64,000 nt of DNA, from NCBI GenBank assembly GCA_048013815.1, contig CM106586.1, forward strand, positions 9,052,001 to 9,116,000. The letters are read 5' to 3'. A program made the position numbers and the translations under genes. Source of the DNA: Setoptus koraiensis. Lineage: Eukaryota; Animalia; Arthropoda. Positions 32,574-64,000 of this stretch are shown piece after piece. Below the pieces are notes generated by a model, which had not been told where the DNA came from, did no database searches, and was given only the letters and a program-made list of their open reading frames with translations. How positions within the stretch are numbered: position 1 is the stretch's first letter; every line of letters begins with the position of its first letter.

Positions 32574-35500
32574 ATGGACTCTACCGCAAGTGATGGTCAG
32601 CAGAGGCCTCGCAAAAGAAAAAGATGGGACGTGATTCCCGAATCAGAACAAGATGCCACAACTGAAGTAGTCGTCAAACCTACACCTGAATTTGTTGCTC
32701 CCAGCAATGGCACCAGCAACAATGCCGTTAAAAATGGCACAAGCGATGAAGAAACTTTCAAAAGACCATCCAGATGGGATGAGACACCCAGAACAGAACG
32801 TGCTAGTGATACTCCGGTGGTGAGCGCGCCGAAAAGACGTTCCAGATGGGATGACCAAGGGGCAGCTCCTATGATTGTCGATGGGTCGGCCACTCCGATA
32901 GGAACTCCAGCGATGGGTATGGCTACACCAACTCCAGGTCACATCATACCAATGACTCCAAGCAATCTGCAAGTCACTGAAGTTGACAAATATAATCGAC
33001 CTTTCACTGACGAGGAACTGGACGAAATACTGCCACCTACAGGATACAGAATCATACCACCTCCTGCTGATTACCAACCCATACGCACCCCTGCTAGAAA
33101 GATGCTTGCTCCAACAGCTACGCCAACACCTCTCTCTGGTGTTCTCATGACACCTGCTCAAGGTTTCTTCATTCAGAATGAAGATTACCAAATGTCGTCA
33201 GCGAAAAAGATTGTGGAACTAGAACCTAAGGGTAATCTTCCCCCTCTGAAGCCGGAAGATTTGCAATTCTTCGGTAATCTACTTCATGACGTCGAAGAGG
33301 ACACACTGAGTGCTGACCAGCAAAGAGATAGAAAAATTATGCGATTGCTTCTTAAGATAAAAAACGGAACTCCACCTATGAGAAAGGTAGCTTTGAGACA
33401 AATTACTGATAAAGCCCGAGAGTTTGGAGCTAAGCCACTATTTGACCAGATACTACCCATTCTGATGTCCCCCACTCTTGAGGAACAAGAGCGTCACTTG
33501 CTCGTCAAAGTTATAGATAGGATTATGTATAAATTAGATGATCTCGTCAGGCCTCATGTTAAGGCAATTCTCATGGTCACTCTACCCTTTCTCATTGATG
33601 AAGACTATTACACCAGAGTAGAGGGTCGTGAGCTGATGTCAAATTTAGCTAAAGCAGCAGGTCTAGCCACCATGATTTCTGCCATGCGTAATGATATAGA
33701 CAACATAGACGAATTTGTAAGAAATACAACAGCGCGAGCGTTCGCTGTTGTGGCTTCCGCATTGGGTATACCAGCTTTATTGCCGTTCTTGAAGGCTGTC
33801 TGTAAAAGTAAAAAATCCTGGCAAGCTAGGCATACCGGTATAAAAATAGTCCAACAAACTGCGTTCCTCATGGGATGTGCTGTTTTACCTTATTCGGCCA
33901 GTTTAGTTCAAACTATAGCTCATGGACTAGAGGACGAACAACAAAAAGTGCGGACAATCACAGCATTGGCTGTGGCTGCATTAGCCGAGTCTTCAGCTCC
34001 GTACGGAATAGAGTCCTTTGACGACGTTATCAAGCCACTTTACAAAGGTATCAAAAACATGAGAGGTAAAGTTCTGGCGGCTTTCTTGAAGGCTATTGGT
34101 TACCTCATACCATTGATGGATGAAGAAGGCGCAAACTATTATACCAGAGAGGTCATGCTTATTCTCATAAGAGAGTTTGCGTCTCCCGATGAAGAGATGA
34201 AGAAGATCGTCATGAAAGTAGTCAAACAATGTTGCAGCACTGACGGTGTTCAACCCCAATATATCAAGGAAGAGGTTTTACCTCATTTTTTCAAGCACTT
34301 TTGGAACCAACGAATGGCTGGAGAGAAAAGAAACTACAAGCAACTAGTTGACACAACTGTGGAGATTGCTAACAAGGTTGGAGCAGGCGAAATAGTGACG
34401 AGGATAGTCAATGATCTGAAAGATAGTAATGAAACTTATAGGAAAATGGTTATGGAGACTATTGATAAAGTGCTAACCAATCTGGGAGCGTCAGAAATAG
34501 ATGAGCGGCTTGAAATACAACTTGTAGATGGTATTATATACGCTTTTCAAGAGCAACATGCTGATGACCAAGTTATGTTGGTGGGATTCGGATCCGTAGT
34601 GAATGCGTTGGGTAAACGAGTCAAGCCATTATTACCTCAGATAACACAAATTATAAAATTTAGGCTATATTCCAAATCAGTCAAGATCCGACAACAGGCG
34701 GCAGATTTGATGGCAAGGATAGCGGACGTCATGAAAAAGTGTGATGAGGAAAAATTAATGAGTGAGATGGGTCTGATTTTGTATGAGTACCTTGGTGAAG
34801 AATATCCCGAAGTACTGGGATCTATTCTGGGAGCTTTAAAGGCCATAGTGAACGTGATAGGAATGCACAAAATGACACCACCAATCAAGGATCTTTTGCC
34901 AAGACTGACACCAATTCTCAAAAACAGACACGAAAAGGTTCAAGAGAATTGCATCGATCTGGTTGGTCGTATTGCCGACAGAGGAGCCGAATCTGTGTCG
35001 CCCCGTGAATGGATGAGAATTTGTTTTGAACTATTGGAATTGTTAAAGGCACATAAGAAGGCAATTAGGCGGGCCACCGTGAACACATTTGGTTATATTG
35101 CAAAAGCCATTGGGCCCCACGATGTCCTGGCGACATTGTTGAACAATTTGCGAGTTCAAGAAAGACAGATGCGTGTGTGTACGACAGTGGCCATTGCAAT
35201 TGTCGCAGAAACTTGCGCCCCATTCACAGTACTACCAGCCCTAATGAATGAATATAGAGTACCTGAGTTAAATGTTCAAAATGGAGTGTTAAAATCATTG
35301 TCATTCTTATTTGAATACATAGGAGAGATGGGTAAAGACTACATATATGCAATTAGTCCTTTATTAGAGGACGCCATGATGGACAGGGATCTTGTTCATC
35401 GGCAAACAGCCTGTTCTGCCGTCCAGCATATGGCCCTTGGTGTGCACGGTTTTGGTTGTGATGACGCCCTAACTCATTTATTGAATTTTATTTGGCCAAA

Positions 35501-35762
35501 TATTTTTGAAAGTTCACCTCATTTAGTTCAATCCTTTATGGGCGCCATAGAAGCATTAAGAGTGGCGATTGGACCAATTAGATTACTTCAATATGTTCTT
35601 CAAGGCTTATTCCATCCAGCTAGAAAAGTAAGAGACGTTTACTGGAAAGTATATAATACTTTATATATAGGCGCCCAGGATGCTTTGGTAGCAGGCTATC
35701 CAGGCATACCAAATGATGAGGTCAACACCTATCACAGGTACGAGCTTGATTATATTTTATAA
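32574..35762 (+). CDS. SF3B1: Splicing factor 3B subunit 1, intronless, 1062 aa from the first ATG
   Basis: RWD(E)TP ULM motifs, the [10 protein letters not shown] p14-binding region, and a HEAT domain nearly identical to metazoan SF3B1, ending RYELDYIL. Confidence 0.98.
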
Positions 35763-35835
35763 TAGTGACATTGTTTATTATTAACTTATTAATATTAGAC
35801 ATATTCTTGTGTGTATATATTATAGAATTGTTATA

Positions 35836-38800
35836 TTATAACACAAATATATTTAAAGGTTTTATAAATATCAATTCGAACCTTTGTTGCGCATATTGTA
35901 TACTTTTTGATTTTATACTTTCGGTGGCGGCAGGGGTGCTGTTGTTACCAATGGCTTTGTTGTTTTCTATAGCTGTAAACATTGTTTGGTCAGTTGCTTG
36001 GCATCTTCTCTTGTTGCTACTGTTGTTGTTGTTGGTTCGTTTTGGTTTCTTTGCTCGCCAATATCTGATCCATGTTGCGCCAGCCACAATGGGAATAGCC
36101 GAAACTGACGAAAATGCCAATGTCCAGCCAGCCACAACTGACCAAAGCGGAAATTTGTAGCCACGATACACTGGCGTCTCGGCCGAGAATATAGACATCG
36201 CAATGACCACCTAGAGAAATGATTACAAATTATGCAAATTAGCGCGTTTACGAGCACAGGTAAAAGTAATTAGCCACTACCGAATGTGCGCAAATGAAGG
36301 ATAGACAAATTGAGTTGTTCCGTTATACTCACGCCCAAAAACAATGGTGATATGTATTTCCAGCATATTATGTAGAATAGATGAGGTTTCTTCCCCAACA
36401 TTGACTCAATATTTGGTATAAAATTTGACAATCCTATGTTTTTGTGACGCCCAGCGTACGTATTCGAAAGTTGTTAATTATTCTGTTATTAATAGTTGAT
36501 TAATTGAGTTTTGTGTCAATCAATTAAATTAAAAGTCAGAAACTTACCGTAACAGTAAACCACACCTATAGCCTCGAATAATGCAGAGAATAGTAAGGAA
36601 ACTCCTGCCGAGTAAACGTCGAACCAATACATGGTGTAAGCTCCGCCCTGAATAAGTGACGATAAAATTTGATTAGTTATCATTGATTCGCCAGTCCCTG
36701 CACCGTTATTTATCTGAATACAAAAAGCCAGTAGTTGATAGCAAATGCAACCCCCTCAACAGCCATATATCAACTATTCAAGTGTATGCGATCAATCAGT
36801 GACTAATGATAATTAAAATTAATTATGGGCAAGCCTTACCTGAGTGCAACTAATTAACGCTGGCAAAAAAGATGATGCAATCACTATAAAAGTTAATTGG
36901 CCTCTTGTTAATCTTCGCGCAATCTTAAATTCGTCCTCCAATCCAGTGATAACTGCCTCTAAACCGCCCATCTAGTTGTTGTGAGCAAATTGTTGAATAG
37001 TAGACGATACAGAACGTGTCAGATCATGACATAACGTGGCAAGTAACGTTATGCGAGAACAATTATTAGCGAGTTGTGAAAAAAAAAACGAAGAAGAAAA
37101 AAGCAAGTGATAAAAAGTAAAAAGCAGTGATTTGTCTTTTTTTCTAGGCAAGCTTACCGCTGAATCGATGCCCAAAGTGAGCAACATAATGAAGAATAGT
37201 ATAGACCAAAATTGAGCGAATGGTAGCGTGGTGAGGGCCTCTGGATAGACCTCAAACACTAGACTGTAGCCCTCTTTTGCCACCTTGTCAATCTCTATGC
37301 CCAGATTGGTGGCCATGTAACCCAAGTAGACAAAAACGACTAGACCCGAATATATGGATGTGGCAGCATTGACGGCAGACGTCACCAAACAATCCCTATA
37401 AAACAGTTGATGTAAACAGTAGTGGTAAAAACGAATATGGTGAATTAACTGTTGTTGCAAAATATGCCAGTGTATAAGATCGCTAACTCACCTGTAACAA
37501 TTATTATTGTGGCCATTGAATGAGGCGTAGGTGAGATGGACGCCGAAGCCCACACCGATGGAATAGAATACCTGTCCGGCGGCGTCCACCCAAACTTGTG
37601 GATCGGCCAATTTCTCTAATCTTGGCGACAAATAGTATGCAATACCCATACCCGCTCCTGGCAGAAATAGGCCTCGCACAAGCAAGACAGTGAGTATCAT
37701 GTAGGGCGCGGTGGCGGTCACCCAGACGACCTGACGACCGAGTCGGAATAACAGATATAATAACAATGATAACAAAATAATATATAGATCATCGGATATC
37801 GTGTACATATACATGAGATTATAAATAATTTCATATATTATAATTGTTACGCAAGTCACAGACACCACTCACCTTGCCTGATGTTTCCAGACCTCTAAAT
37901 AGCGAGAAAAAATGCAACGTATACACCACCAAGGTGCACACCACCAATCCTGGCCTCAGGTAGCCCATGTCCTCGAGACCGGTCGATTTATCCAGCTCAA
38001 GCAGTTCTTTCACAAAGAACTCTGATGCCGGGGATGTGATCTCCCTCTGGGAGAACAGTTCCGCCTTACAAGCCTCTAGACTCATGTTTTTCGGACTGCA
38101 CAAGTCTCTCAATTGTCTAATAGACATACAAGTTGCATTGTTCCATTCGTGATTGCACTCTTCCCACGGCATTTTAGCAGCTGTCAGAAGTGGGGCCAAA
38201 TTAATTTAACCAAAAGTTGACAAGGTTAAAAAGGGACTATCTTACTCTAGTATAGTATCTTTAGACTAGTGGCATGTGGCCGAAAACAATCACGGCAGCT
38301 ATTATATTATCATTATTATTATGTATATTATTATTATGGGGCTACATAATAATAATTATATTGAGCGCGGATTGATATTATTATATAATTATAATATCAA
38401 TTGAGCCGACATTGGCTGATTCAACGATGGGCTAATATTCGAATAATAATCATGGGTAATACTCACTCGATGAAATGCTCCTGTATATAAAATAGACACT
38501 CCAGGCTATGAGGACATTGTAGTAAAAGGACACGTACCACGAAATGAGTATGCTGCAATAACCGACGCCCTTCATCGAGGGACAAATTTTGTTCCAAACG
38601 GTTATGGGCCCCTTCTTGACAAATTGACCTAGTAATAACTCTAAAAAGAATAACGGAATTCCGCCAAAGATTAACATTATAATATAGGGTATTAAAAAAA
38701 CGCCGCCCCCGTTTTTGTAACATAAATAGGGAAAGCGCCATATGTTGGCTAAATCAACAGCAAAGCCAATAATTGATAATAGAAAATCCATTTTTTTGCC

Positions 38801-39931
38801 CCAACGCAATCTAATTTCTGAGCTTGATTTGGACATGGCGCAACTGTTGAGCGCCGAAGAATTCAGAGACGACGAACCATCGGGCGATCTAATGTTGCCT
38901 GTAGTGGTAGTTGTAGTGGTTGTGGTGGTGGTAGTGGTGGCGGTATTAGTGGTTGTGTTTTGGTTGTTTTGGTTGCTACTTTGGTTGCTACTTTGGTTAT
39001 TTTGGTTGCCACTTTGATTGCAGCTAGAGTTTAGAGTATTCTGGATATTTTGGGTGTTTGATGCGGCGCTAGTTGAGGTGTTGAATTTTGGATTAGACAC
39101 CACCACTTGCTTGAACGAGTGCCCATCGGGACATGCCACCACCTTTAGGCTGGTGGCATTTGGCTGATTATAACTGTTGTTTGTTAATCGATTATCCTTG
39201 TTTGTGCTATTAAACAGCAATGAGCATTCGCTGTTATTATCTAGCGTCACATTATTATGCAATTGTTTGCTATTAATCAAGCTAGTTGTGGCGCGTGCCG
39301 GTGCAGAAGAAGAGGCCATTGCATTCCTATTGTCGGACAGATAATTGTCGCTGCTGTTAGTGGCTGTTGCATTGGTCATTGCATAACGTTGTTGTTGCAG
39401 TTGTTGTTGTTGCTGCTGTTGTTGCTGTTGTTGCTGTTGTTGCTGTTGTTGCTGTTGTTGTTGTTGATGTTGTTGTTGTGGAACGTTGCTATCGTGGAGG
39501 ATGTTTGCGTGTACATTCGTGACCAACTCGTTTCGTTTTTGTGTGCTCTGTTTGTATTGGTCACGAGCGTCAGAATCGATCGAGAACTGGGCCTCTTGAT
39601 TGAGGCCAGCGGCCTCTTCGTGGTGATGGAAATGTTTTTGCTTCTTTGAATTGACCATCGACGACAATTTGTGCCTAACTCTCTCTGTGTATGTCAGTGC
39701 ACGTTGCTTGTTTGCTGAATCTAGTGCTTGCGTGGGCGGCTGTTGCTGGTGCAGAGCCGACGACGACGCCAACGATTGCTCCAGATCCAGCTCCAGCTCC
39801 TCCTGAATTTTGGACAAATCGTGGTCCCTTTCCAGCGCGGGTCCTGTCAATTGAGCCCTTGAGGGCCGCTCGAGCGTCTGATGATTGCCTGCTAAACTGG
39901 ACTGCTGCTGCTGTTTGCCGCTGCTATTCAT
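35836..39931 (-). CDS. SLC6 sodium/chloride-dependent monoamine transporter (octopamine/dopamine/noradrenaline-transporter-like); exons 38467-39931, 37873-38180, 37492-37730, 37158-37395, 36840-36971, 36548-36647, 36333-36433, 35836-36210 (985 aa)
   Basis: [34 protein letters not shown] contains the TM1 Asp of monoamine transporters. Also MPWEEC..W, K|[29 protein letters not shown]|[10 protein letters not shown] and WKYISP. All eight exons splice in phase. Confidence 0.93.
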
Positions 39932-40955
39932 TGATGACGATTACACGATCTGATATTCACCTGTCGCTACTAGTTGTCCTATAAAATAAAATAGTAATAA
40001 TGATAATAATAATGATAACAATTCCTGCGACAATCGCAATGTTCGTTCAGCAAGCTACAATTGTTGTACTAATGAGCTAATAATATGTGTTGTTTTGGTT
40101 GTTTTGTTATGGTGCTAATTGGGTGCTGATTCGGTGCCGATTCGGTGCCGGAGATGCGACCATTGAGCGGCGATCGCGATGCCGGGATGTTGGAATAAAT
40201 TGGCGCTAACGCGACTAAATTGGCAAGCAATTATTATTAATATTATTGTTTGTATGATCATCCGACGAGCTAATTGGTCTAGGCAAATCGTCGAGCTTGT
40301 TAGTGTCAGTTGAGTGAGTTGGGCTGATCGCTTTGAAGTTGCATGTATCAATGCGTGTACCATATGCACAGGCAGGCATAGGTAAATTGTTTGTAATTGA
40401 ACATGTTGTTGTTTGTTGTTTGTTAGGTGATCTTACGTGACTGAAAAAGGGTTAGCGTTGAGCAACGACGATATTTGAACATGTCGGACAAAACGATTAG
40501 TTAGTGGCGGTTGCACAAGTCATTTTGCATACTAATCTGTTGATGTTGATGGTGATGTCGTTGTCGTTTGGACTATTATCTAATTTGAATATATTATTAG
40601 GCCGCCGATTGTGCCAAGCGAGGCTCGCCGCTCAACAGCTTCAAGAGCTTGCGTTCAATGAGCCGGCCGACGGTGTCAGGCAAGGTGAGCGGTGGTGCGC
40701 TCGGCAAGCTGTTGATTAGACCGTTGATTAGACACTGTTGATGAAACACACTGACACACTGATAAATTACAATTGCCACCACTGTGTTGTGGCATACAAT
40801 TTCTAGGTCAGCGGCCTGTTATTGTTGCGCTGGCAGCGCTAATTGCGGACTTGATTTGCGGATTTGCCTAAAAATTAATTAATTGTCTAAATTTAGATGT
40901 AGCTGTTGATGCTCAAGTGATGTCAAGTGATACAATTAACGAGATAAATGGCAAA

Positions 40956-40963
40956 CTTTTATA
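40956..40963 (-). promoter_or_regulatory. Candidate TATA box of the SLC6 gene (mirror at 57451-57458, +)
   Basis: TATAAAAG on the minus strand with TCACTT Inr-like words ~30 nt downstream, ~1 kb upstream of the ATG. Function is inferred. Confidence 0.45.
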
Positions 40964-43900
40964 CCATGTTTGTATTATGTGTGTTGGTGTTGCTGCTCGT
41001 TTGCTGGCCAACGACCACTGTTTGTTTGTTGTCGCTGTTGTTGTCGCTGTTGTTGTCGCTGTTGTTGTTGCTGTTGTTGTTGCTGTTGCTCATTCCCATG
41101 GGAACCCCATTGGCAGCAACATCACTGGCACCACCAACAACAAATGATTGAGCAGAAGCAGATTATTGCGGGCAGCAGCGATTAACAGCCAGCCAGACAT
41201 TGAGCGAGCCAGCTCGATAGTTTGTGAGCCAATGCAGCCTGTTAGCCCGACAGTGGGCTCGATAGACGGCTCGACAGTGGGCTCGCTAGACGGCTCGATA
41301 GTCGGCGAGCCAGACAGCCAGCCAGCTAGCTAACCAGCGAGACAGGTACAAGAGAAAAGATTATTATTATTATTATTTTGACGCTTATCGATCGCTGATT
41401 ATCAATGGTTTATTTTGTCGCCAATGTTAATCCATTGAACCATTGCTAGCCAGTGTGTGCTGTTGCTTGTTGCCAATGTGCGATTTGTGATTCCCATTTG
41501 TGATAGCTTCGATCTCCAATTGCGACTTCTATTTAATCTATGTGAACACAATGCCAGCGTAAGCCAGCCTCTCTATAGATGTAAATTAAAACCTAAACAA
41601 GTAAAAGAAGATTCCACAAGCTGACTTGTCTCGCCTGATGCTGTTGCTGCTGCTTGTCGCGTCGACGATTGTCGCTTGCTGCTTCGATTTCGAATTGGCT
41701 TCTTGCTTCGTAAATGGTGGATTTGATTTAATCTTTGCACCGCCGTTGCGCCGCACCAAAGCCAGTGGCAACAGTTTTGTTTGCGGGCGCTATCTGTGCA
41801 GCTAATAACAAATCAATTAAACACAACAACATTCGCAGCTATCTTGTGACAACTATTTAGGCGATTACTGTTACCCTGCCAAGAGATGACGTAATATCGC
41901 TGTTGCTGTTGCCGGCTGTCGCTGGCTTCGGCTGGCTTCGGCTGGCTGCTGGCTGCCGGCTAGGGTGGCAACGGCTTAAATTTATATTTTGCTTATAAAT
42001 AACTTTTGCGCTGCTCGCACACTGGCGATCGCTTCTCGAAATAAACAAACTGGGCGCTCGTTAGCTAGGTGTGTGTGTCACTCAGGTAAACTCTTCATCT
42101 CTTGCTTGTCATGTCGTCGTGATTTAATCGGATTATGTAAGCTGTTGTGCCGGTCGTCGTTGAGGCAGTGGCAGTTGTTGCAGCGGTTGCAGCGGTTGCA
42201 GTTGTTGCAGCGGTTGCAGTTGTTGCAGCGGTTGCAGTTGTTGCAGTTGTTGGGCTCTCTCGCTCTCGGGCAGACAAGGCCCGGCTAAACGATCTCTCTG
42301 CTCGCTCGATTGATATTTTGTCGAGTGTGTGTGTGTATTTCTCAGAGAACCAGATTGCAAATCAAACAGCCAGTTGCGCGTCGCCTCACCCAGTCAATAC
42401 AGCAGCGTGACACAATGCGACACCACTGGCGACAACAACGCCACCGCCAACAACCACAACCACCACAACTGCAACCGCTGCAGCAAGTGTGTAAATACAT
42501 GGTGCCACATTGTGTGTGTGCGTGTGTGTGTGTGTGACCTTACACACAATATGACATTTCTGACACACTCAGAGCGGCGCGTCGGCTCGGGGCCCCCAAA
42601 ACGCCCCAAAGAATTTCGCTCAATAGCAGTGAGCTCGAGTCATTACTGCGGAACCAACCGTTGCGCACTTGTTATGTTGACGTGTGGGGACACTTTTTGT
42701 CCTCTGCTCCACACAGTCAACGGGCCCCACAGTCAGCGGGCCCCACAGTCGGCGGGCCCCAAAGTCAAACGCTAGCTGACAGCAGAGAGCACAGCGAGCG
42801 CATCTCGAGCTGCCATCGTCTCGGGCCACTCGATTGCAAGCAAAATTGCTTTTCCGGCACAATGCCGGCTAACAAGTGATTGTGGGGCCCCGTCAATTAG
42901 CGAGTGCATCAATTGGCGCAACGGCCAACTACTACTTGTTGTAATCGGCAACAACATTTCCGTTTGCTTGCCAGTTTGCGATCAAAATCGGCCCCAAAGC
43001 TGCCGCTGACGAGCCACGACCCTGGCCCAAATCTCGACGCGATCCGCAGCACAACAATGTTGGCACAACAACATTGTTTTGGCGTGCACACTGTTTAATT
43101 AAATATCTATTATGTAATTGCGGGGCAATAATTGCGCCGAGAAGCCCAACCAAACGAAGAAGAGAGGCCCAGAAGAGAAGCCAAGGAGATGTTGCCATGA
43201 TATGATATGGTAGCAATAAGCGTCACTATCGTCGCTCACAATCAACAGACAAGTCAAATGACAGCAGTGCCAGTTATTGCCACCATTGGGGGCGCCTTTG
43301 TGCCCACAATTTGATTAAAGCGGCTCGCAGGTAGATTGGGGGGGGGGCCCGGCTTAGTGTGCACAGCGATGGTGGATTGTGTTCATTAATCATTTATATC
43401 ATCATCATAATCATATTGTCCATTGATTAATCATCATTTAATCTTGTTCTCCCTCGCTACGGTCGCCGGTCGCCGCTTGTTGGGCCCCAAAACAAGTCGG
43501 CCCGACGAATATTGGAGCGGCGGTTTTTAGGTCACACACTAAGCGGCGGACAATTTGTCGCCCGAATGGAATGAGCGCGACAAACTGACCAGCGTCATTT
43601 GGCCCGTTTGTCCATTTGGCCGGCCCGGCGCGATCAAGTGTCGGGCGCGCAGACATTGACCGTCTGGCAACCCGCGCGGCCCCCAATGTCCGGCCGGCGC
43701 GCCACAAAACCTCACAAATTGTGAGTCACAATGCGGCAATATATTTGCGGCTGGTGCGGCTCACAACACAGAATATATATTGAAATGTTGTTTAATATCG
43801 GCGCCATACGAGCAATCTCTTTCTTTGGGGCGCCTCTCGATTTCGCTGATCCTATTTCTTGTCTAGTGGCGTTGTAATCATGGCGACCGGGTAATTGTTG

Positions 43901-51285: not shown

Positions 51286-52741
51286 TGTGGTTGTTTTATC
51301 GGACTAAATTCTCTGCTAAATAAACGATTCTGCTGATGGCTGTGAACTTGTTGTCTGAGAATGGCTGTTGTGCAAAAAAATTTGTTGTTTAGTGGAAATT
51401 ATTTTGTTATTTACTGCTAACTGATGCTCAATGTGCCGGCAATTGTGAGACTAGCGACAGCGATCGAATGACACCAAGTGACGATGTTACCGATGACTGA
51501 CAAAAACGCGCTATGATGGCAAATTTGGCTGAAATTGATTGCTTTTATACTTTTCAGAGGCCCTACTTTGCCCAATTACGAGGCACGTCTACATGACCCC
51601 AGTTCGCTCAAATGACATTTCGTTTTGGCGTCATGTCATTTGGCGTCATGTCAATGGCAAATCTCGGCCGCTTTTCCCGGTCAATTGTGGGCCCCTTTTC
51701 ATTTGGGCTGTCATGTGTATTGAGATGTTCATCGACTATTGATACTATTGCCATGACATCATCAAAATACATCATGATACGTCATGACAGTTTGACGAGC
51801 ACGAGCCGGCTTCATCAGATTGTGGCCACACATCAATTCAATTGTCCGCACACTCTCTGATTGGCTCATTGGTGGCGTATTACGGCGTCTCATTCATACC
51901 AAATCACACAATTTGGTTGGCCGGGCAAACGGAAATTCATTGCCATCATGGTTTGTCATTATGGCGGTGAACTCATCAAATTAGTCAAGTTATATTGACA
52001 CAACTGTTGGCCGCTTTTGTCCGGCTTTTTGCTGGTTATTAACCTAGGCTGTCGGGGTTGTTATTAGTGTGCCCTTAGTTATCTGTTGCCACACCGGCTA
52101 GGCAGGCCAAAAAAAGTTTGCAAAAAGAGATTCGGGCGAAAAAAGCTGGCGCATAATAATGTTTCTATTCACGGTGCGCCCTCTGTGAATAGATGCCCCG
52201 GGATGGGGCCCCTATGGCGTCGCATCGTGAACTCCCAAGCCGGCCGCATCTACCTAGGTCACACACACACACACGCAGCAAGAGATGGGGCCCCGAACAG
52301 ACGTTGGGTCGTCTGTCTGGGCAACAAGAGTCACTTTGCATAGCATAGGTCGCCAATTCTTTTCAAATTTTTGCTCTCTATCTGTCGTTGGTTTCTTTTT
52401 TGCCCGCTGGCTGCCTGAATTGCTCGATGAATCGCTTGCACGGGCTTGCACGCGCCACCCGCATGCTTTTTAGGCCTCTTGCTCGGGCTCAATCGGGAGG
52501 CCGGCGGATCTTTGTTGGGGGGCACGGCGTGAATTTGAATCAGTGCCTCGACATTGAATTGCGGCGCCCCAAAGTCGACAGCGACGACACACAAAATCCG
52601 CGTAATCATGCGTATGCGAGAAACGTTCATTAAATCGCCATTTAGCCGCCTGTCCATCGATAGGCCACCTACATGGCGGACATATAGACGGCATATAGCC
52701 GCCGAGGAACAGAAAAAAAGCTCGCCAAGTCGCTAGGCGCG

Positions 52742-52802
52742 CCGCTGAAGCCCGCTAGATGTCGGCGCCGGCAAGAAGCCCACATCTAGCGGGTTTCAGC
52801 GG
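52742..52802. repeat. Mirror copy of the 61-bp hairpin, in the same + orientation as 45669-45729
   Basis: The + strand string is identical to 45669-45729, although its flanks are reverse-complemented. Confidence 0.93.
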
Positions 52803-53461
52803 TCAAATAGCGGCGGCGGTTTTAGCCTATTTTTAGCCCCGCGACGATCGAGCGACACTTTTCAACTGAATTCCGCATTTAAACATTGAATTTTAAAGCG
52901 ACCAGCTCCAAGTCCGGCCACACCAGTCCATATGTTTGAGTGCACTCTCGCGCCGGTTGCAAGGGTACCGCTTTTCGCCCGAAGCTGAACTTTGCCGCTC
53001 GCAACCAAAAAGCCGGCCCGCCGAGCGGCCCAGCGGACGACCCAAGTCAGTTTCGTCGATTGTCTCTCGGTGCCGGGCAACGGGTGCCAACTGGTTCGCG
53101 AGAATCGATCTATTCTCGCCCGATTATCGCCCGATTCTTGCCCTTTCGTCGCTCAAATCGCCGGAACACGAGATTTCGTCTCCATGGTGACGGGTCCCTT
53201 TGACAGTTTGTCAGCGCCAGACCCAGGTTGCCAGCGCCATCTGGCAACCTGGGACATTCCGTTAGTTGGTGACAGTGCTCGCGCGCAAGCCAGAGTTGGC
53301 CGCCAAGCGGAGCATCGCCAGTTTAAACTGGCCCCTGGTTTTGAGATGGCCGGCCAGCCGGAGCTCATTTGCGCGCCCCTTAATAGTCTGTAACAGTTGT
53401 TATTATTAGTTATTACACATTAGTTATTATCATGCTGCAATTTAATTTCATCACTGAATCG

Positions 53462-53530
53462 CTGGTTATCGCTGGATATCGGCGTTGGTTATCGCTGGAT
53501 ATCGGCGTTGGTTATCGCTGGATATCGGCG
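53462..53530. repeat. 23-bp tandem repeat, 3 copies (mirror of 44895-45008)
   Basis: Three units of (c/t)tggttatcgctggatatcggcg. Confidence 0.95.
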
Positions 53531-56500
53531 CCACCAAGCGACCATTATTCAGTGTGGCAGTGGCATGGTGAGGCGAGAGCAAGTGTCACGAAATTATCAC
53601 TTAGATTGTCACTTGATGCTTGCCACTGGCGATAATGGCCCCAAGCGAGCGTCAACCTTTAATCAGTCGACCGGCTCGCTGGCTAACGGGGCGCCATGAT
53701 ATGCGCCATGCACCAGCGCCAATCCGGTTAGTTGGTGGGGCCCGGTTAGACGCACCGCGACGCAACAGCGGCACTCGGGCCATTGTTGTAGTTGTTGTGG
53801 CTAGTGACGGTGGTGCCAGACAACAACAGCAACTGCCCGAAGTGAGTGGCGGACCGGACCGGTCCGGTCCGGTTTTGGCGCGCCAGTCGGGCAGACAAGA
53901 AAAGCCGAGACGAGACAAGACAAGACGGGACACAGAGGCCAGCCGGAATCAGGCAGAAATTAATGGAGTGCATGATATATATGATATAGTTGATATATTG
54001 CCTACTCTTACATAACAAACCATATATGTGTGAGCCAGCGTGTAAAAACCATATATAACAGCACATATGAGGCATACATAAATGATATATAAATATTGGG
54101 GCGCATCGCCATCCAATAAGCGTGTCGTTAGCACCGTTATTTGGGGCCAGCGGGTCCAATATAAACAAATATGAGCGCCGTGCATTGTGCCGGCAAGACA
54201 AGTAGTAGTTGCTCGTTACGTAAGTGAGGCCGCCACTATCTTGTAAATTGACTATGTGCTTTGGCTAACAAAGTGACTGTCGCGCCCGACAAATAACTCC
54301 ACCGGCGCCAGGCTCATTGTTGTTCATCGGGCCCGCCAACACACAATGCCTTTTCATCTTGGCCCTTCTCACTCACACTTTGGGCCCCAAACTTGTCGGC
54401 CGAGCACATTCCAACAATGTGTCTGGCCGCTCATAGCCATACAGATCGCTATATAGTGCAAATATATGCCATTTATGCGCCCCTTAGCACCGTCAGTGTG
54501 AGGCGCACGGCCCGACAATGGCCAACAATTACCCGGTCGCCATGATTACAACGCCACTAGACAAGAAATAGGATCAGCGAAATCGAGAGGCGCCCCAAAG
54601 AAAGAGATTGCTCGTATGGCGCCGATATTAAACAACATTTCAATATATATTCTGTGTTGTGAGCCGCACCAGCCGCAAATATATTGCCGCATTGTGACTC
54701 ACAATTTGTGAGGTTTTGTGGCGCGCCGGCCGGACATTGGGGGCCGCGCGGGTTGCCAGACGGTCAATGTCTGCGCGCCCGACACTTGATCGCGCCGGGC
54801 CGGCCAAATGGACAAACGGGCCAAATGACGCTGGTCAGTTTGTCGCGCTCATTCCATTCGGGCGACAAATTGTCCGCCGCTTAGTGTGTGACCTAAAAAC
54901 CGCCGCTCCAATATTCGTCGGGCCGACTTGTTTTGGGGCCCAACAAGCGGCGACCGGCGACCGTAGCGAGGGAGAACAAGATTAAATGATGATTAATCAA
55001 TGGACAATATGATTATGATGATGATATAAATGATTAATGAACACAATCCACCATCGCTGTGCACACTAAGCCGGGCCCCCCCCCCAATCTACCTGCGAGC
55101 CGCTTTAATCAAATTGTGGGCACAAAGGCGCCCCCAATGGTGGCAATAACTGGCACTGCTGTCATTTGACTTGTCTGTTGATTGTGAGCGACGATAGTGA
55201 CGCTTATTGCTACCATATCATATCATGGCAACATCTCCTTGGCTTCTCTTCTGGGCCTCTCTTCTTCGTTTGGTTGGGCTTCTCGGCGCAATTATTGCCC
55301 CGCAATTACATAATAGATATTTAATTAAACAGTGTGCACGCCAAAACAATGTTGTTGTGCCAACATTGTTGTGCTGCGGATCGCGTCGAGATTTGGGCCA
55401 GGGTCGTGGCTCGTCAGCGGCAGCTTTGGGGCCGATTTTGATCGCAAACTGGCAAGCAAACGGAAATGTTGTTGCCGATTACAACAAGTAGTAGTTGGCC
55501 GTTGCGCCAATTGATGCACTCGCTAATTGACGGGGCCCCACAATCACTTGTTAGCCGGCATTGTGCCGGAAAAGCAATTTTGCTTGCAATCGAGTGGCCC
55601 GAGACGATGGCAGCTCGAGATGCGCTCGCTGTGCTCTCTGCTGTCAGCTAGCGTTTGACTTTGGGGCCCGCCGACTGTGGGGCCCGCTGACTGTGGGGCC
55701 CGTTGACTGTGTGGAGCAGAGGACAAAAAGTGTCCCCACACGTCAACATAACAAGTGCGCAACGGTTGGTTCCGCAGTAATGACTCGAGCTCACTGCTAT
55801 TGAGCGAAATTCTTTGGGGCGTTTTGGGGGCCCCGAGCCGACGCGCCGCTCTGAGTGTGTCAGAAATGTCATATTGTGTGTAAGGTCACACACACACACA
55901 CGCACACACACAATGTGGCACCATGTATTTACACACTTGCTGCAGCGGTTGCAGTTGTGGTGGTTGTGGTTGTTGGCGGTGGCGTTGTTGTCGCCAGTGG
56001 TGTCGCATTGTGTCACGCTGCTGTATTGACTGGGTGAGGCGACGCGCAACTGGCTGTTTGATTTGCAATCTGGTTCTCTGAGAAATACACACACACACTC
56101 GACAAAATATCAATCGAGCGAGCAGAGAGATCGTTTAGCCGGGCCTTGTCTGCCCGAGAGCGAGAGAGCCCAACAACTGCAACAACTGCAACCGCTGCAA
56201 CAACTGCAACCGCTGCAACAACTGCAACCACTGCCACTGCCTCAACGACGACCGGCACAACAGCTTACATAATCCGATTAAATCACGACGACATGACAAG
56301 CAAGAGATGAAGAGTTTACCTGAGTGACACACACACCTAGCTAACGAGCGCCCAGTTTGTTTATTTCGAGAAGCGATCGCCAGTGTGCGAGCAGCGCAAA
56401 AGTTATTTATAAGCAAAATATAAATTTAAGCCGTTGCCACCCTAGCCGGCAGCCAGCAGCCAGCCGAAGCCAGCCGAAGCCAGCGACAGCCGGCAACAGC

Positions 56501-58482
56501 AACAGCGATATTACGTCATCTCTTGGCAGGGTAACAGTAATCGCCTAAATAGTTGTCACAAGATAGCTGCGAATGTTGTTGTGTTTAATTGATTTGTTAT
56601 TAGCTGCACAGATAGCGCCCGCAAACAAAACTGTTGCCACTGGCTTTGGTGCGGCGCAACGGCGGTGCAAAGATTAAATCAAATCCACCATTTACGAAGC
56701 AAGAAGCCAATTCGAAATCGAAGCAGCAAGCGACAATCGTCGACGCGACAAGCAGCAGCAACAGCATCAGGCGAGACAAGTCAGCTTGTGGAATCTTCTT
56801 TTACTTGTTTAGGTTTTAATTTACATCTATAGAGAGGCTGGCTTACGCTGGCATTGTGTTCGCATAGATTAAATAGAAGTCGCAATTGGAGATCGAAGCT
56901 ATCACAAATCGCACATTGGCAACAAGCAACAACACACTGGCTAGCAATGGTTCAATGGATTAACATTGGCGACAAAATAAACCATTGATAATCAGCGATC
57001 GATAAGCGTCAAAATAATAATAATAATAATCTTTTCTCTTGTACCTGTCTCGCTGGTTAGCTAGCTGGCTGGCTGGCTGGCTCGCCGACTATCGAGCCGT
57101 CTATCGAGCCGTCTAGCGAGCCCACTGTCGAGCCGTCTATCGAGCCCACTGTCGGGCTAACAGGCTGCATTGGCTCACAAACTATCGAGCTGGCTCGCTC
57201 AATGTCTGGCTGGCTGTTAATCGCTGCTGCCCGCAATAATCTGCTTCTGCTCAATCATTTGTTGTTGGTGGTGCCAGTGATGTTGCTGCCAATGGGGTTC
57301 CCATGGGAATGAGCAACAGCAACAACAACAGCGACAACAACAGCGACAACAACAGCGACAACAACAGCGACAACAACAACGACAACAAACAAACAGTGGT
57401 CGTTGGCCAGCAAACGAGCAGCAACACCAACACACATAATACAAACATGGTATAAAAGTTTGCCATTTATCTCGTTAATTGTATCACTTGACATCACTTG
57501 AGCATCAACAGCTACATCTAAATTTAGACAATTAATTAATTTTTAGGCAAATCCGCAAATCAAGTCCGCAATTAGCGCTGCCAGCGCAACAATAACAGGC
57601 CGCTGACCTAGAAATTGTATGCCACAACACAGTGGTGGCAATTGTAATTTATCAGTGTGTCAGTGTGTTTCATCAACAGTGTCTAATCAACGGTCTAATC
57701 AACAGCTTGCCGAGCGCACCACCGCTCACCTTGCCTGACACCGTCGGCCGGCTCATTGAACGCAAGCTCTTGAAGCTGTTGAGCGGCGAGCCTCGCTTGG
57801 CACAATCGGCGGCCTAATAATATATTCAAATTAGATAATAGTCCAAACGACAACGACATCACCATCAACATCAACAGATTAGTATGCAAAATGACTTGTG
57901 CAACCGCCACTAACTAATCGTTTTGTCCGACATGTTCAAATATCGTCGTTGCTCAACGCTAACCCTTTTTCAGTCACGTAAGATCACCTAACAAACAACA
58001 AACAACAACATGTTCAATTACAAACAATTTACCTATGCCTGCCTGTGCATATGGTACACGCATTGATACATGCAACTTCAAAGCGATCAGCCCAACTCAC
58101 TCAACTGACACTAACAAGCTCGACGATTTGCCTAGACCAATTAGCTCGTCGGATGATCATACAAACAATAATATTAATAATAATTGCTTGCCAATTTAGT
58201 CGCGTTAGCGCCAATTTATTCCAACATCCCGGCATCGCGATCGCCGCTCAATGGTCGCATCTCCGGCACCGAATCGGCACCGAATCAGCACCCAATTAGC
58301 ACCATAACAAAACAACCAAAACAACACATATTATTAGCTCATTAGTACAACAATTGTAGCTTGCTGAACGAACATTGCGATTGTCGCAGGAATTGTTATC
58401 ATTATTATTATCATTATTACTATTTTATTTTATAGGACAACTAGTAGCGACAGGTGAATATCAGATCGTGTAATCGTCATCA

Positions 58483-61400
58483 ATGAATAGCAGCGGCAAA
58501 CAGCAGCAGCAGTCCAGTTTAGCAGGCAATCATCAGACGCTCGAGCGGCCCTCAAGGGCTCAATTGACAGGACCCGCGCTGGAAAGGGACCACGATTTGT
58601 CCAAAATTCAGGAGGAGCTGGAGCTGGATCTGGAGCAATCGTTGGCGTCGTCGTCGGCTCTGCACCAGCAACAGCCGCCCACGCAAGCACTAGATTCAGC
58701 AAACAAGCAACGTGCACTGACATACACAGAGAGAGTTAGGCACAAATTGTCGTCGATGGTCAATTCAAAGAAGCAAAAACATTTCCATCACCACGAAGAG
58801 GCCGCTGGCCTCAATCAAGAGGCCCAGTTCTCGATCGATTCTGACGCTCGTGACCAATACAAACAGAGCACACAAAAACGAAACGAGTTGGTCACGAATG
58901 TACACGCAAACATCCTCCACGATAGCAACGTTCCACAACAACAACATCAACAACAACAACAGCAACAACAGCAACAACAGCAACAACAGCAACAACAGCA
59001 GCAACAACAACAACTGCAACAACAACGTTATGCAATGACCAATGCAACAGCCACTAACAGCAGCGACAATTATCTGTCCGACAATAGGAATGCAATGGCC
59101 TCTTCTTCTGCACCGGCACGCGCCACAACTAGCTTGATTAATAGCAAACAATTGCTATAATAATGTGACGCTAGATAATAACAGCGAATGCTCATTGCTG
59201 TTTAATAGCACAAACAAGGATAATCGATTAACAAACAACAGTTATAATCAGCCAAATGCCACCAGCCTAAAGGTGGTGGCATGTCCCGATGGGCACTCGT
59301 TCAAGCAAGTGGTGGTGTCTAATCCAAAATTCAACACCTCAACTAGCGCCGCATCAAACACCCAAAATATCCAGAATACTCTAAACTCTAGCTGCAATCA
59401 AAGTGGCAACCAAAATAACCAAAGTAGCAACCAAAGTAGCAACCAAAACAACCAAAACACAACCACTAATACCGCCACCACTACCACCACCACAACCACT
59501 ACAACTACCACTACAGGCAACATTAGATCGCCCGATGGTTCGTCGTCTCTGAATTCTTCGGCGCTCAACAGTTGCGCCATGTCCAAATCAAGCTCAGAAA
59601 TTAGATTGCGTTGGGGCAAAAAAATGGATTTTCTATTATCAATTATTGGCTTTGCTGTTGATTTAGCCAACATATGGCGCTTTCCCTATTTATGTTACAA
59701 AAACGGGGGCGGCGTTTTTTTAATACCCTATATTATAATGTTAATCTTTGGCGGAATTCCGTTATTCTTTTTAGAGTTATTACTAGGTCAATTTGTCAAG
59801 AAGGGGCCCATAACCGTTTGGAACAAAATTTGTCCCTCGATGAAGGGCGTCGGTTATTGCAGCATACTCATTTCGTGGTACGTGTCCTTTTACTACAATG
59901 TCCTCATAGCCTGGAGTGTCTATTTTATATACAGGAGCATTTCATCGAGTGAGTATTACCCATGATTATTATTCGAATATTAGCCCATCGTTGAATCAGC
60001 CAATGTCGGCTCAATTGATATTATAATTATATAATAATATCAATCCGCGCTCAATATAATTATTATTATGTAGCCCCATAATAATAATATACATAATAAT
60101 AATGATAATATAATAGCTGCCGTGATTGTTTTCGGCCACATGCCACTAGTCTAAAGATACTATACTAGAGTAAGATAGTCCCTTTTTAACCTTGTCAACT
60201 TTTGGTTAAATTAATTTGGCCCCACTTCTGACAGCTGCTAAAATGCCGTGGGAAGAGTGCAATCACGAATGGAACAATGCAACTTGTATGTCTATTAGAC
60301 AATTGAGAGACTTGTGCAGTCCGAAAAACATGAGTCTAGAGGCTTGTAAGGCGGAACTGTTCTCCCAGAGGGAGATCACATCCCCGGCATCAGAGTTCTT
60401 TGTGAAAGAACTGCTTGAGCTGGATAAATCGACCGGTCTCGAGGACATGGGCTACCTGAGGCCAGGATTGGTGGTGTGCACCTTGGTGGTGTATACGTTG
60501 CATTTTTTCTCGCTATTTAGAGGTCTGGAAACATCAGGCAAGGTGAGTGGTGTCTGTGACTTGCGTAACAATTATAATATATGAAATTATTTATAATCTC
60601 ATGTATATGTACACGATATCCGATGATCTATATATTATTTTGTTATCATTGTTATTATATCTGTTATTCCGACTCGGTCGTCAGGTCGTCTGGGTGACCG
60701 CCACCGCGCCCTACATGATACTCACTGTCTTGCTTGTGCGAGGCCTATTTCTGCCAGGAGCGGGTATGGGTATTGCATACTATTTGTCGCCAAGATTAGA
60801 GAAATTGGCCGATCCACAAGTTTGGGTGGACGCCGCCGGACAGGTATTCTATTCCATCGGTGTGGGCTTCGGCGTCCATCTCACCTACGCCTCATTCAAT
60901 GGCCACAATAATAATTGTTACAGGTGAGTTAGCGATCTTATACACTGGCATATTTTGCAACAACAGTTAATTCACCATATTCGTTTTTACCACTACTGTT
61001 TACATCAACTGTTTTATAGGGATTGTTTGGTGACGTCTGCCGTCAATGCTGCCACATCCATATATTCGGGTCTAGTCGTTTTTGTCTACTTGGGTTACAT
61101 GGCCACCAATCTGGGCATAGAGATTGACAAGGTGGCAAAAGAGGGCTACAGTCTAGTGTTTGAGGTCTATCCAGAGGCCCTCACCACGCTACCATTCGCT
61201 CAATTTTGGTCTATACTATTCTTCATTATGTTGCTCACTTTGGGCATCGATTCAGCGGTAAGCTTGCCTAGAAAAAAAGACAAATCACTGCTTTTTACTT
61301 TTTATCACTTGCTTTTTTCTTCTTCGTTTTTTTTTTTTCACAACTCGCTAATAATTGTTCTCGCATAACGTTACTTGCCACGTTATGTCATGATCTGACA

Positions 61401-62581
61401 CGTTCTGTATCGTCTACTATTCAACAATTTGCTCACAACAACTAGATGGGCGGTTTAGAGGCAGTTATCACTGGATTGGAGGACGAATTTAAGATTGCGC
61501 GAAGATTAACAAGAGGCCAATTAACTTTTATAGTGATTGCATCATCTTTTTTGCCAGCGTTAATTAGTTGCACTCAGGTAAGGCTTGCCCATAATTAATT
61601 TTAATTATCATTAGTCACTGATTGATCGCATACACTTGAATAGTTGATATATGGCTGTTGAGGGGGTTGCATTTGCTATCAACTACTGGCTTTTTGTATT
61701 CAGATAAATAACGGTGCAGGGACTGGCGAATCAATGATAACTAATCAAATTTTATCGTCACTTATTCAGGGCGGAGCTTACACCATGTATTGGTTCGACG
61801 TTTACTCGGCAGGAGTTTCCTTACTATTCTCTGCATTATTCGAGGCTATAGGTGTGGTTTACTGTTACGGTAAGTTTCTGACTTTTAATTTAATTGATTG
61901 ACACAAAACTCAATTAATCAACTATTAATAACAGAATAATTAACAACTTTCGAATACGTACGCTGGGCGTCACAAAAACATAGGATTGTCAAATTTTATA
62001 CCAAATATTGAGTCAATGTTGGGGAAGAAACCTCATCTATTCTACATAATATGCTGGAAATACATATCACCATTGTTTTTGGGCGTGAGTATAACGGAAC
62101 AACTCAATTTGTCTATCCTTCATTTGCGCACATTCGGTAGTGGCTAATTACTTTTACCTGTGCTCGTAAACGCGCTAATTTGCATAATTTGTAATCATTT
62201 CTCTAGGTGGTCATTGCGATGTCTATATTCTCGGCCGAGACGCCAGTGTATCGTGGCTACAAATTTCCGCTTTGGTCAGTTGTGGCTGGCTGGACATTGG
62301 CATTTTCGTCAGTTTCGGCTATTCCCATTGTGGCTGGCGCAACATGGATCAGATATTGGCGAGCAAAGAAACCAAAACGAACCAACAACAACAACAGTAG
62401 CAACAAGAGAAGATGCCAAGCAACTGACCAAACAATGTTTACAGCTATAGAAAACAACAAAGCCATTGGTAACAACAGCACCCCTGCCGCCACCGAAAGT
62501 ATAAAATCAAAAAGTATACAATATGCGCAACAAAGGTTCGAATTGATATTTATAAAACCTTTAAATATATTTGTGTTATAA
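58483..62581 (+). pseudogene. Second copy of the SLC6 monoamine transporter with a +1 frameshift near 59157 (real or a sequencing error); exons 58483-59948, 60235-60542, 60685-60923, 61020-61257, 61446-61577, 61770-61869, 61984-62084, 62207-62581
   Basis: attgctataataatg here vs attgcataataatg in the left copy; the extra T gives a stop at 59158-59160. The rest is essentially identical. Confidence 0.85.
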
Positions 62582-62654
62582 TATAACAATTCTATAATAT
62601 ATACACACAAGAATATGTCTAATATTAATAAGTTAATAATAAACAATGTCACTA

Positions 62655-64000
62655 TTATAAAATATAATCAAGCTCGTACCTGTGATAGGTGTTGACCTCA
62701 TCATTTGGTATGCCTGGATAGCCTGCTACCAAAGCATCCTGGGCGCCTATATATAAAGTATTATATACTTTCCAGTAAACGTCTCTTACTTTTCTAGCTG
62801 GATGGAATAAGCCTTGAAGAACATATTGAAGTAATCTAATTGGTCCAATCGCCACTCTTAATGCTTCTATGGCGCCCATAAAGGATTGAACTAAATGAGG
62901 TGAACTTTCAAAAATATTTGGCCAAATAAAATTCAATAAATGAGTTAGGGCGTCATCACAACCAAAACCGTGCACACCAAGGGCCATATGCTGGACGGCA
63001 GAACAGGCTGTTTGCCGATGAACAAGATCCCTGTCCATCATGGCGTCCTCTAATAAAGGACTAATTGCATATATGTAGTCTTTACCCATCTCTCCTATGT
63101 ATTCAAATAAGAATGACAATGATTTTAACACTCCATTTTGAACATTTAACTCAGGTACTCTATATTCATTCATTAGGGCAGGTAGTACTGTGAATGGGGC
63201 GCAAGTTTCTGCGACAATTGCAATGGCCACTGTCGTACACACACGCATCTGTCTTTCTTGAACTCGCAAATTGTTCAACAATGTCGCCAGGACATCGTGG
63301 GGCCCAATGGCTTTTGCAATATAACCAAATGTGTTCACGGTGGCCCGCCTAATTGCCTTCTTATGTGCCTTTAACAATTCCAATAGTTCAAAACAAATTC
63401 TCATCCATTCACGGGGCGACACAGATTCGGCTCCTCTGTCGGCAATACGACCAACCAGATCGATGCAATTCTCTTGAACCTTTTCGTGTCTGTTTTTGAG
63501 AATTGGTGTCAGTCTTGGCAAAAGATCCTTGATTGGTGGTGTCATTTTGTGCATTCCTATCACGTTCACTATGGCCTTTAAAGCTCCCAGAATAGATCCC
63601 AGTACTTCGGGATATTCTTCACCAAGGTACTCATACAAAATCAGACCCATCTCACTCATTAATTTTTCCTCATCACACTTTTTCATGACGTCCGCTATCC
63701 TTGCCATCAAATCTGCCGCCTGTTGTCGGATCTTGACTGATTTGGAATATAGCCTAAATTTTATAATTTGTGTTATCTGAGGTAATAATGGCTTGACTCG
63801 TTTACCCAACGCATTCACTACGGATCCGAATCCCACCAACATAACTTGGTCATCAGCATGTTGCTCTTGAAAAGCGTATATAATACCATCTACAAGTTGT
63901 ATTTCAAGCCGCTCATCTATTTCTGACGCTCCCAGATTGGTTAGCACTTTATCAATAGTCTCCATAACCATTTTCCTATAAGTTTCATTACTATCTTTCA
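62655..64000 (-). CDS. SF3B1: Second copy of SF3B1 (3' portion; continues past the window edge)
   Basis: The translation is identical to the C-terminal 438 aa of the + copy. Confidence 0.95.

Follow-up and report, generated by a model that had tools for sequence, protein, structure and literature searches.

Does the chromosome 2 segment of Setoptus koraiensis that we analysed, a window of 64,000 nucleotides, hold a genuine gene-bearing palindrome, or does its second half repeat the first because of an error of assembly? The initial annotation had put forward both possibilities, describing a real palindrome with two copies of a monoamine transporter and, as its alternative, an artefact in which a fold-back read joined two haplotypes head to head. 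We compared the window with itself, and the limits of the arms were set by adding the DNA that flanks it.

The deposited sequence does contain a near-perfect inverted repeat. Self-comparison of the window returned 12 collinear blocks of 94–100% identity, and a single inverted alignment of 14.5 kb inside the window has 98.94% identity. With the flanking DNA added, the arms occupy 23867–48894 and 49565–74552 (window-equivalent coordinates) and measure ∼25.0–25.1 kb each, the right arm running 10.5 kb beyond the window end, up to C2:9126552. In their outer 21 kb the arms are 99.54% identical and in their inner 4 kb 98.97%; the palindrome has its axis near 49229. The near-perfect inverted repeat that had been described is thus present with arms larger (∼25.0 kb each) than those first given. 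Its arms had been placed from 34417 onward with a length of at least 14.4 kb; the repeat itself stands, while position 34417 proves to be merely the mirror of the window end and not a limit. The ∼0.7 kb said to separate the clean arms corresponds to a 670-bp apex between 48894 and 49565. The parts of the structure are as follows.

23867–48894, unstranded: left arm, in its natural chromosomal context and continuous with the sequence on its left.
45669–45729, unstranded: 61-bp hairpin, a 100% same-strand match to 52742–52802.
48895–49089, unstranded: degraded left apex flank, ∼79% like the mirror of 49405–49564 (139/175 aligned positions) and transversion-rich.
49090–49382, plus strand: T-rich low-complexity junk (T 65%, A 4%).
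49383–49404, plus strand: PacBio SMRTbell hairpin adapter remnant, identified by alignment (adapter positions 26–45 with one 2-nt insertion).
49405–49564, unstranded: degraded right apex flank.
49565–64000 in the window and on to the equivalent of 74552, unstranded: right arm, probable false copy, ending at a 500-N gap.

The two outer ends of the repeat differ. On the left the arm joins unique flanking sequence, and a 565-aa open frame of a trypsin gene (23469–25166, minus strand) crosses the boundary at 23867 without a break. On the right the arm does not reach unique flanking sequence and instead terminates at the first N of a run of 500 N, inside the trypsin exon that is intact on the left. 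No mirror continuation was detected past this gap. Comparison of the start of the post-gap contig with the end of the left arm gave zero overlap; the only post-gap match is a trypsin paralogue of 75–80% identity located ∼20 kb further on. The next contig opens with ∼1 kb of (CCCCA)n-like junk, and no Pfam hits were obtained in the first post-gap open frames. A run of 500 N is the default spacer of 3D-DNA (PMC9292758). The window itself contains no N, and so there is no N gap at the apex, which indicates that the join at the apex was not made by the scaffolder.

The genes recognised in the left arm and across its outer boundary are listed below.

23469–25840, minus strand: trypsin/CUB serine protease gene (PF00089 at 3e-48, and PF00431).
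30720–31904, minus strand: WD40-repeat gene with an open frame of 394 aa, identified by domain search.
32559–36160, plus strand: SF3B1, apparently complete and wholly inside the arm (PF08920 at 4e-31, HEAT repeats).
36972–39931, minus strand: SLC6 transporter of monoamine type (DAT/NET/SERT-like) with at least 4 exons (PF00209 positions 1–365, in four ORFs).

Open frames are intact in both arms. The 1067-aa SF3B1 exon is 100% identical between them, and the right-arm copy of the WD40 gene shows 2 residue differences plus a 2-residue in-frame indel. The outer boundary at 23867 falls within the Trypsin domain of the protease, leaving the right-arm copy without the part that bears GDSGGP. Regarding the earlier statement that the arms duplicate the 3′ part of SF3B1, the location of SF3B1 inside the arms is correct and the restriction to its 3′ part is not, given that the arms hold the whole apparent gene together with WD40 and most of trypsin/CUB. 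The monoamine-type assignment of the SLC6 gene is upheld. Its best solved relatives (PDB) are NET, DAT and SERT at ∼1e-49, with creatine, taurine and GABA carriers following at 1e-42 to 1e-38, and its TM1 reads AVDLAN, which includes the Asp that we take to be diagnostic of monoamine-type SLC6 proteins. The C-terminal third of this protein was not located in searches run on separate exons rather than on a joined spliced model. No Pfam hits were found in the GC-rich non-coding block or in the neuropeptide-like ORF.

The structured differences between the arms, to which the initial annotation had drawn attention, have the character of natural variants and not of read errors. They are mostly transitions (29:12) and include indels of whole repeat units, with lengths of 6, 12, 12, 13, 18 and 46 bp. 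A cluster of substitutions occurs at 45690–45708, and the 61-bp hairpin has the same orientation in both arms and is hence flipped relative to its mirror, constituting one allele-like arm difference. The right arm probably represents another haplotype that was sampled at this locus.

The apex has a different composition. Its 670 bp are not a spacer, as they enclose ∼290–295 bp of T-rich unmirrored junk. This material is 63–67% T on the plus strand at both sides of the axis and is therefore not palindromic. In the flanks of the apex the ratio of transitions to transversions is 8:18, compared with 29:12 in the arms (Fisher p = 0.002). The degraded apex reported earlier is thus confirmed by a flank match of only ∼79%, by the excess of transversions and by the T-rich junk. 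When the end of an insert is predicted from the arm lengths, it falls on the left side at ∼49060–49095, which is where the junk starts.

Look-alikes of the junk are present at no fewer than 12 further loci in the assembly. Among seven that we sampled, six are within ∼5 kb of a 500-N gap and three abut one, and no inverted repeat of ≥500 bp was found at any of the seven. The sampled loci give no support to the idea that fold-backs are systematic in this assembly, and the junk is a marker of contig ends. We also note that the junk at the apex, at ∼290 bp, is far longer than an adapter.

An adapter tail sits precisely where the junk stops and the mirrored sequence starts. Measured against the reference adapter as printed in PMC8864876, 20 of 45 adapter bases are recognisable at the apex, these being the last 20 nt, with the 5′ half not recognisable. 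In a local alignment over 114 kb the adapter match scored 34 versus 33 for low-complexity matches, making it marginally the best. A gapped adapter motif, written after the apex had been seen, has a single occurrence in the window, where 0 of 100 shuffles produced a match, and a single occurrence in the 48.7-Mb assembly. Matches to the (GTT)n stretch of the adapter are frequent throughout the genome (125 versus 130 for a reversed control). Control DNA of 200 kb contained 172 GTTGTTGTTG sites (GTT runs), and an adapter-like tail followed none of them. The seven sampled junk loci likewise lacked the tail when scanned at a threshold matched to the apex score. No intact or near-intact adapter (27-mer, ≤3 mismatches) was found in the assembly, as would be expected after UniVec screening. 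With 3 mismatches allowed, adapter sub-patterns matched nothing beyond (GTT)n or (CTC)n background, about as often as the reversed control did, a result that has no bearing on further remnants.

Published details of the project (all PMC11920263) bear on how such a structure could arise. DNA from >100,000 pooled wild mites, with a heterozygosity of 1.13%, was sequenced from a 30-kb SMRTbell library in CLR mode, with 194x of Illumina data. The pipeline comprised Flye 2.6, NextPolish, purge_dups, 3D-DNA and a UniVec screen, and it yielded two chromosomes with an N50 of 24.53 Mb, a final size of 47 Mb and 5.1% duplicated BUSCOs. An arm of ∼25.1 kb is no longer than one insert of this library (PMC11920263), and missed adapters have been named among the artefacts of CLR reads (PMC6304105). 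The 30-kb CLR library, the pooled mites, Flye and 3D-DNA together explain why the arms have this length, why a gap of 500 N is present and why the arms differ in an allele-like manner. Inverted duplicates within one contig are not known to be removed by purge_dups, and tools that compare contig with contig would not purge them; a UniVec screen would likewise be expected to miss a 20-nt adapter remnant that contains an indel.

Drawing on the assembly sequence and the published library data, we consider that the inverted repeat is a false duplicate that entered the assembly through a missed-adapter fold-back read, with a probability of roughly 85%. We favour an artefact because the right arm ends at a gap, because the apex junk gives way to a hairpin-adapter tail, and because the pooled mites were sequenced from a 30-kb CLR library. 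On these same grounds the real palindrome proposed earlier is not sustained, and the fold-back alternative, with its view that a degraded apex speaks for an artefact, is. In our proposed sequence of events, a SMRTbell insert of ∼25 kb would have spanned window positions 23867 to ∼49090. On reaching the right end of this insert, the polymerase would have passed through the hairpin adapter and then returned along the complementary strand. The junk and the adapter tail are observed in the assembly, and noise in this T-rich stretch may have hidden the adapter such that the read was left unsplit. Flye would then have extended the contig with the palindromic read where true extension failed, and the contig would have doubled back along the 25 kb already covered and stopped at the end of the read; the arm does end where the contig ends. 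During polishing, read errors would have been cleared wherever real reads map, while real population variants by which the two draft arms differed could have been kept, as reads with each allele would map best to the arm already carrying that allele. The apex would have stayed noisy owing to real reads not mapping there, a proposal that is in keeping with the two substitution spectra observed. Finally, 3D-DNA would have appended the next contig with its spacer, and the 500 N are present.

An artefact could also have arisen with no missed-adapter read. A retained haplotig of the same 25 kb might have been joined head to head through mis-resolution of the graph at contig-end junk, the adapter-like tail being a coincidence. 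The allele-like arm differences in a pooled sample with 1.13% heterozygosity would suit such a join, as would the occurrence of similar junk at many contig ends that have no adapter, and the adapter match is after all partial. We nevertheless regard this origin as unlikely, as the motif occurs nowhere else in 48.7 Mb and is placed exactly at the border of junk and mirror, the arm length fits one SMRTbell insert, and an apex that lacks an N gap was not built by the scaffolder.

That the chromosome truly carries a palindrome of at least 25 kb, which would have arisen through fold-back or inverted duplication and may have been kept homogeneous by gene conversion, seems to us very improbable. It would double SF3B1, the monoamine-type SLC6 gene and their neighbours, and it would entail a poorly assembled spacer, a contig break that fell in the right arm by chance and again a coincidental adapter-like tail. 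Two inverted arms of high identity are indeed present, their open frames are intact, and their natural-looking variants, including the flipped hairpin, are what diverging paralogous arms would show. However, the centre of a genuine palindrome should be real genomic DNA, and what we found there is unmirrored junk of the contig-end class followed by a hairpin-adapter tail. Furthermore, the right arm has no outer junction to unique DNA and breaks off at a gap within an exon, each arm is as long as one library insert, and the 194x Illumina data should have polished a real spacer.

The missed-adapter duplicate that we favour resembles error class D of HiFiAdapterFilt (PMC8864876), in which an inverted duplicate inside a contig has a SMRTbell adapter at its turning point as a result of a read left unsplit at the hairpin. 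That class was described for HiFi data with an intact adapter (PMC8864876), whereas here the data are CLR and the adapter is degraded to 20 nt plus an indel, comes after noise of ∼290 nt and would go unnoticed in a vector screen. It also resembles foldback reads (PMC12870357) and missed CLR adapters (PMC6304105), where a symmetric palindromic read has halves that map to one place on opposite strands and is said to tangle assembly graphs (PMC12870357, PMC6304105). Those reports concern reads, whereas our case is known solely from the end product in a chromosome-scale assembly. Like retained haplotigs and other false duplications in heterozygous or pooled assemblies, the locus offers a 99.5% second copy with differences of allelic type and an adjoining gap, but here the second copy stands in inverted orientation, fused to the first in a single contig. 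With genuine palindromes, such as those of sex-chromosome ampliconic regions or the fold-back inversions of breakage-fusion-bridge cycles, it shares long arms of >99% identity, intact genes and a short centre. In those cases the centre is genuine DNA and the flanks on both sides are unique, unlike the present locus with its junk and adapter tail at the centre and one arm that runs into a contig end.

Taken together, the sequence from window 49090 to the equivalent of 74552, ∼25 kb of chromosome 2, is probably false, and the main import of the finding is for quality control. Similar errors in CLR assemblies may be recognised by an inverted duplicate running into a scaffold gap, with unmirrored low-complexity junk at its axis and a degraded adapter tail missed by vector screens, and the kilobase-scale junk at many contig ends calls for the same caution toward findings that adjoin 500-N gaps in this genome. 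Were the palindrome true after all, which we very much doubt, an eriophyoid mite, whose genome is among the smallest of any animal, would carry an inverted duplication of at least 50 kb with two copies of SF3B1, an essential splicing factor, and of a transporter of the dopamine/noradrenaline type. The probably false arm would give a spurious second SF3B1, monoamine-type SLC6 and WD40 gene and a truncated protease. Such copies would raise gene counts and the figures for duplicated BUSCOs, and studies of gene-family expansion or acaricide targets could be misled by them. The biological content of the locus is probably one copy of a 25-kb segment with the trypsin/CUB protease, WD40, SF3B1, SLC6, the GC-rich non-coding block and the neuropeptide-like ORF. 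Thus this mite most likely has a single copy each of SF3B1, the DAT/NET-like SLC6 gene, the WD40 gene, the trypsin/CUB gene that lies partly in the arms, and the neuropeptide-like ORF.

The large inverted repeat reported in the initial annotation is present, as a repeat search of the window returned 12 collinear inverted blocks of 94-100% identity (34417-48894 vs 49565-64000) that BLAST merged into a single 14.5-kb alignment at 98.94%. The left limit of 34417 given there is merely the mirror of the window end. The window corresponds to C2:9052001-9116000 (C1 and C2 being the two chromosome-scale sequences). Window 33000-36000 has a full-length match on the minus strand of C2:9114417-9117417, and in a self-comparison of 114 kb including flanks the arms span window 23867-48894 and window-equivalent 49565-74552, in a numbering that continues past 64000 into flanking C2 DNA. 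Each arm is thus ∼25.0 kb long (25,028 nt on the left and 24,988 nt on the right), and the two share 99.54% identity in the outer 21 kb and 98.97% in the inner 4 kb. Gene calls, which rest on unspliced exons searched separately, are as follows.

Gene content of the left arm
from 23469, minus strand, trypsin/CUB protease
30720-31904, minus strand, WD40 gene
32559-36160, plus strand, SF3B1, apparently complete within the arm
36972-39931, minus strand, SLC6 transporter
42-46 kb, GC-rich block with no family matches in Pfam
within the arm, neuropeptide-like ORF

Outside this repeat the window holds an older duplication, direct between 12158-13589 and 20133-21849 (95-97%) and inverted between 11824-12147 and 23120-23443 (98.5%), which overlaps an exostosin (GT47/GT64) gene at 19777-22227. 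At 338-563 there is a ∼220-bp short interspersed repeat with dozens of copies on both chromosomes (81-94% identity) that looks like a MITE or SINE.

The right arm stops exactly where a 500-N run starts (window-equivalent 74553-75052, C2:9126553-9127052), a length that 3D-DNA uses as its spacer by default (PMC9292758). The mirror point on the left, 23867, is spanned without interruption by an open frame of 565 aa that encodes a Trypsin domain (PF00089, 3e-48), with GDSGGP encoded just past the boundary. What truncates the right copy within its protease domain is therefore the end of a contig and not a join to other DNA. Beyond the gap we found no mirror continuation, the sole similarity being a 75-80% paralogue ∼20 kb further on. 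This trypsin/CUB paralogue (window-equivalent 94365-95853, C2:9146365-9147853) has 75-87% DNA identity over exons and is oriented opposite to the left-arm copy. The first ∼1 kb of the post-gap contig (window-equivalent 75053-76050, 79% C) is junk of a degenerate (CCCCA)n type, and long ORFs within it are artefacts of composition.

The apex between the clean arms (48895-49564) is not a normal spacer. Its flanks, 48895-49089 and 49405-49564, share a mirror identity of only ∼79% and differ by 8 transitions to 18 transversions, vs 29:12 in the arms (Fisher p = 0.002). Between them, 49090-49382 is low-complexity DNA (T 65%, A 4%) whose plus strand is T-rich to the left of the geometric centre as well as to the right (63% and 67%). 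In a true palindrome, a T-rich side would be mirrored by an A-rich one. The junk terminates at 49383-49404 with TTGTTGTTGTTGAG-TA-AGAGAT, which aligns to the SMRTbell adapter sequence given in PMC8864876 (positions 26-45) with one 2-nt insertion, so that the recognisable portion of the adapter is 20 of its 45 bases. Judged only by local score, this match has a narrow lead over low-complexity matches elsewhere (34 vs 33; best score 30 in 200 kb of control DNA). As (GTT)n alone is common in the genome (125 matches vs 130 for the reversed control), specificity resides in the tail. The gapped motif GTTGTTGTTGAG N0-3 AGAGAT, composed after the apex had been inspected, occurs once in the window (0 of 100 shuffles match) and once in the entire 48.7-Mb assembly, at the apex. 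None of 172 GTTGTTGTTG sites in the 200-kb control, ∼25 kb of which is junk of the apex type, is followed by an adapter-like tail. The tail lies 160 nt from the clean right arm, and together with the arm lengths this predicts a left insert end at ∼49060-49095, where the junk starts.

Look-alikes of the apex junk occur at 12 or more further loci, some of them kilobases long. Among seven fetched with flanks, six have a 500-N gap within ∼5 kb and in three the junk abuts it (C1:2187925, C1:22540283 and, ∼20 bp off, C2:23920681). This class of junk is thus a contig-end marker in the assembly, and the apex is built of contig-end material. Large inverted repeats were present at 0 of the 7 loci, which therefore give no support for frequent fold-backs in the assembly. 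The following blocks, T- or A-rich, low in complexity and 0.2 to ∼11 kb long, resemble the apex junk at ∼75% and probably represent noise at contig ends or low-complexity DNA that resists resolution, not ordinary sequence; the majority of those sampled adjoin 500-N gaps.

Junk blocks resembling the apex
C1:110621-121821
C1:2185221-2187921
C1:7116849-7127320
C1:13222229-13226750
C1:15748558-15757053
C1:18400585-18409788
C1:21102837-21110060
C1:23617090-23622799
C2:11489481-11494441, T-rich part directly abutting A-rich part with no gap between
C2:17437901-17447447
C2:23710861-23720161

The last block is followed immediately by direct repeats 3.3-3.5 kb long (C2:23720124-23732674; 97.5-99.9%, period ∼5 kb), which lie ∼6 kb from a 500-N gap and could be either a real tandem array or a further duplication made in assembly.

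The initial annotation regarded the differences between the arms as structured, and they are natural variants: 41 substitutions outside the apex, mainly transitions; indels that are short homopolymer steps or comprise whole repeat units (6, 12, 12, 13, 18 and 46 bp); and a 61-bp hairpin (45669-45729) with the same orientation in both arms, its flipped loop being a population hairpin-inversion polymorphism if the duplicate is an artefact. The arms diverge by 0.11% across the outer part, which is dense in genes, and by 0.44% across the inner 4 kb, which is non-coding. Coding frames are almost unchanged between the arms: the 1067-aa SF3B1 exon is identical, and the WD40 gene shows 2 residue differences plus an indel of 2 residues. 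These differences fit two haplotypes of a polymorphic sample.

The published assembly (two chromosomes, N50 24.53 Mb; C2 here is 24,533,333 bp) derives from a pool of >100,000 wild individuals sequenced from a 30-kb SMRTbell library in CLR mode at 496x, assembled with Flye 2.6 plus one polishing round and two NextPolish rounds with Illumina reads, followed by purge_dups, 3D-DNA with Juicebox and a UniVec screen (PMC11920263). K-mer heterozygosity is 1.13%, duplicated BUSCOs are 5.1%, and the final size is 47 Mb (PMC11920263) vs 48.76 Mb summed over the two sequences here. Missed adapters are among the listed CLR read artefacts (PMC6304105), and foldback reads can tangle assembly graphs (PMC12870357). 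From the directly observed structure, gap, junk, adapter tail and substitution spectra we infer, as the best reading, that the duplicate is an artefact of a single CLR read through an undetected hairpin adapter. Such a read would have returned over its 25-kb insert on the opposite strand, and Flye would have extended the contig end with it, stopping where the read stopped. Polishing would then have corrected the two arms wherever genuine reads align, preserving population variants and leaving the apex noisy; the degraded adapter would have escaped the vector screen, and 3D-DNA would have placed 500 N before the contig that follows. This mechanism would explain the arm length and the clean outer cut, the junk with its adapter tail, and the allele-like differences along with the two distinct substitution spectra. 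A genuine palindrome in the mite genome we consider very improbable.

If the duplicate is such an artefact, the genes listed for the arm are each a single real copy. In the SLC6 gene, an open frame upstream of the first SNF exon (38453-39931, minus strand) has 496 aa in the left arm vs 275 aa in the right, where a 1-bp indel at 39258 shortens it, and most of this frame is therefore probably not coding. The first SNF exon itself has NET, DAT and SERT as its nearest solved structures (∼1e-49), and TM1 carries the Asp that we take to be diagnostic of monoamine carriers.
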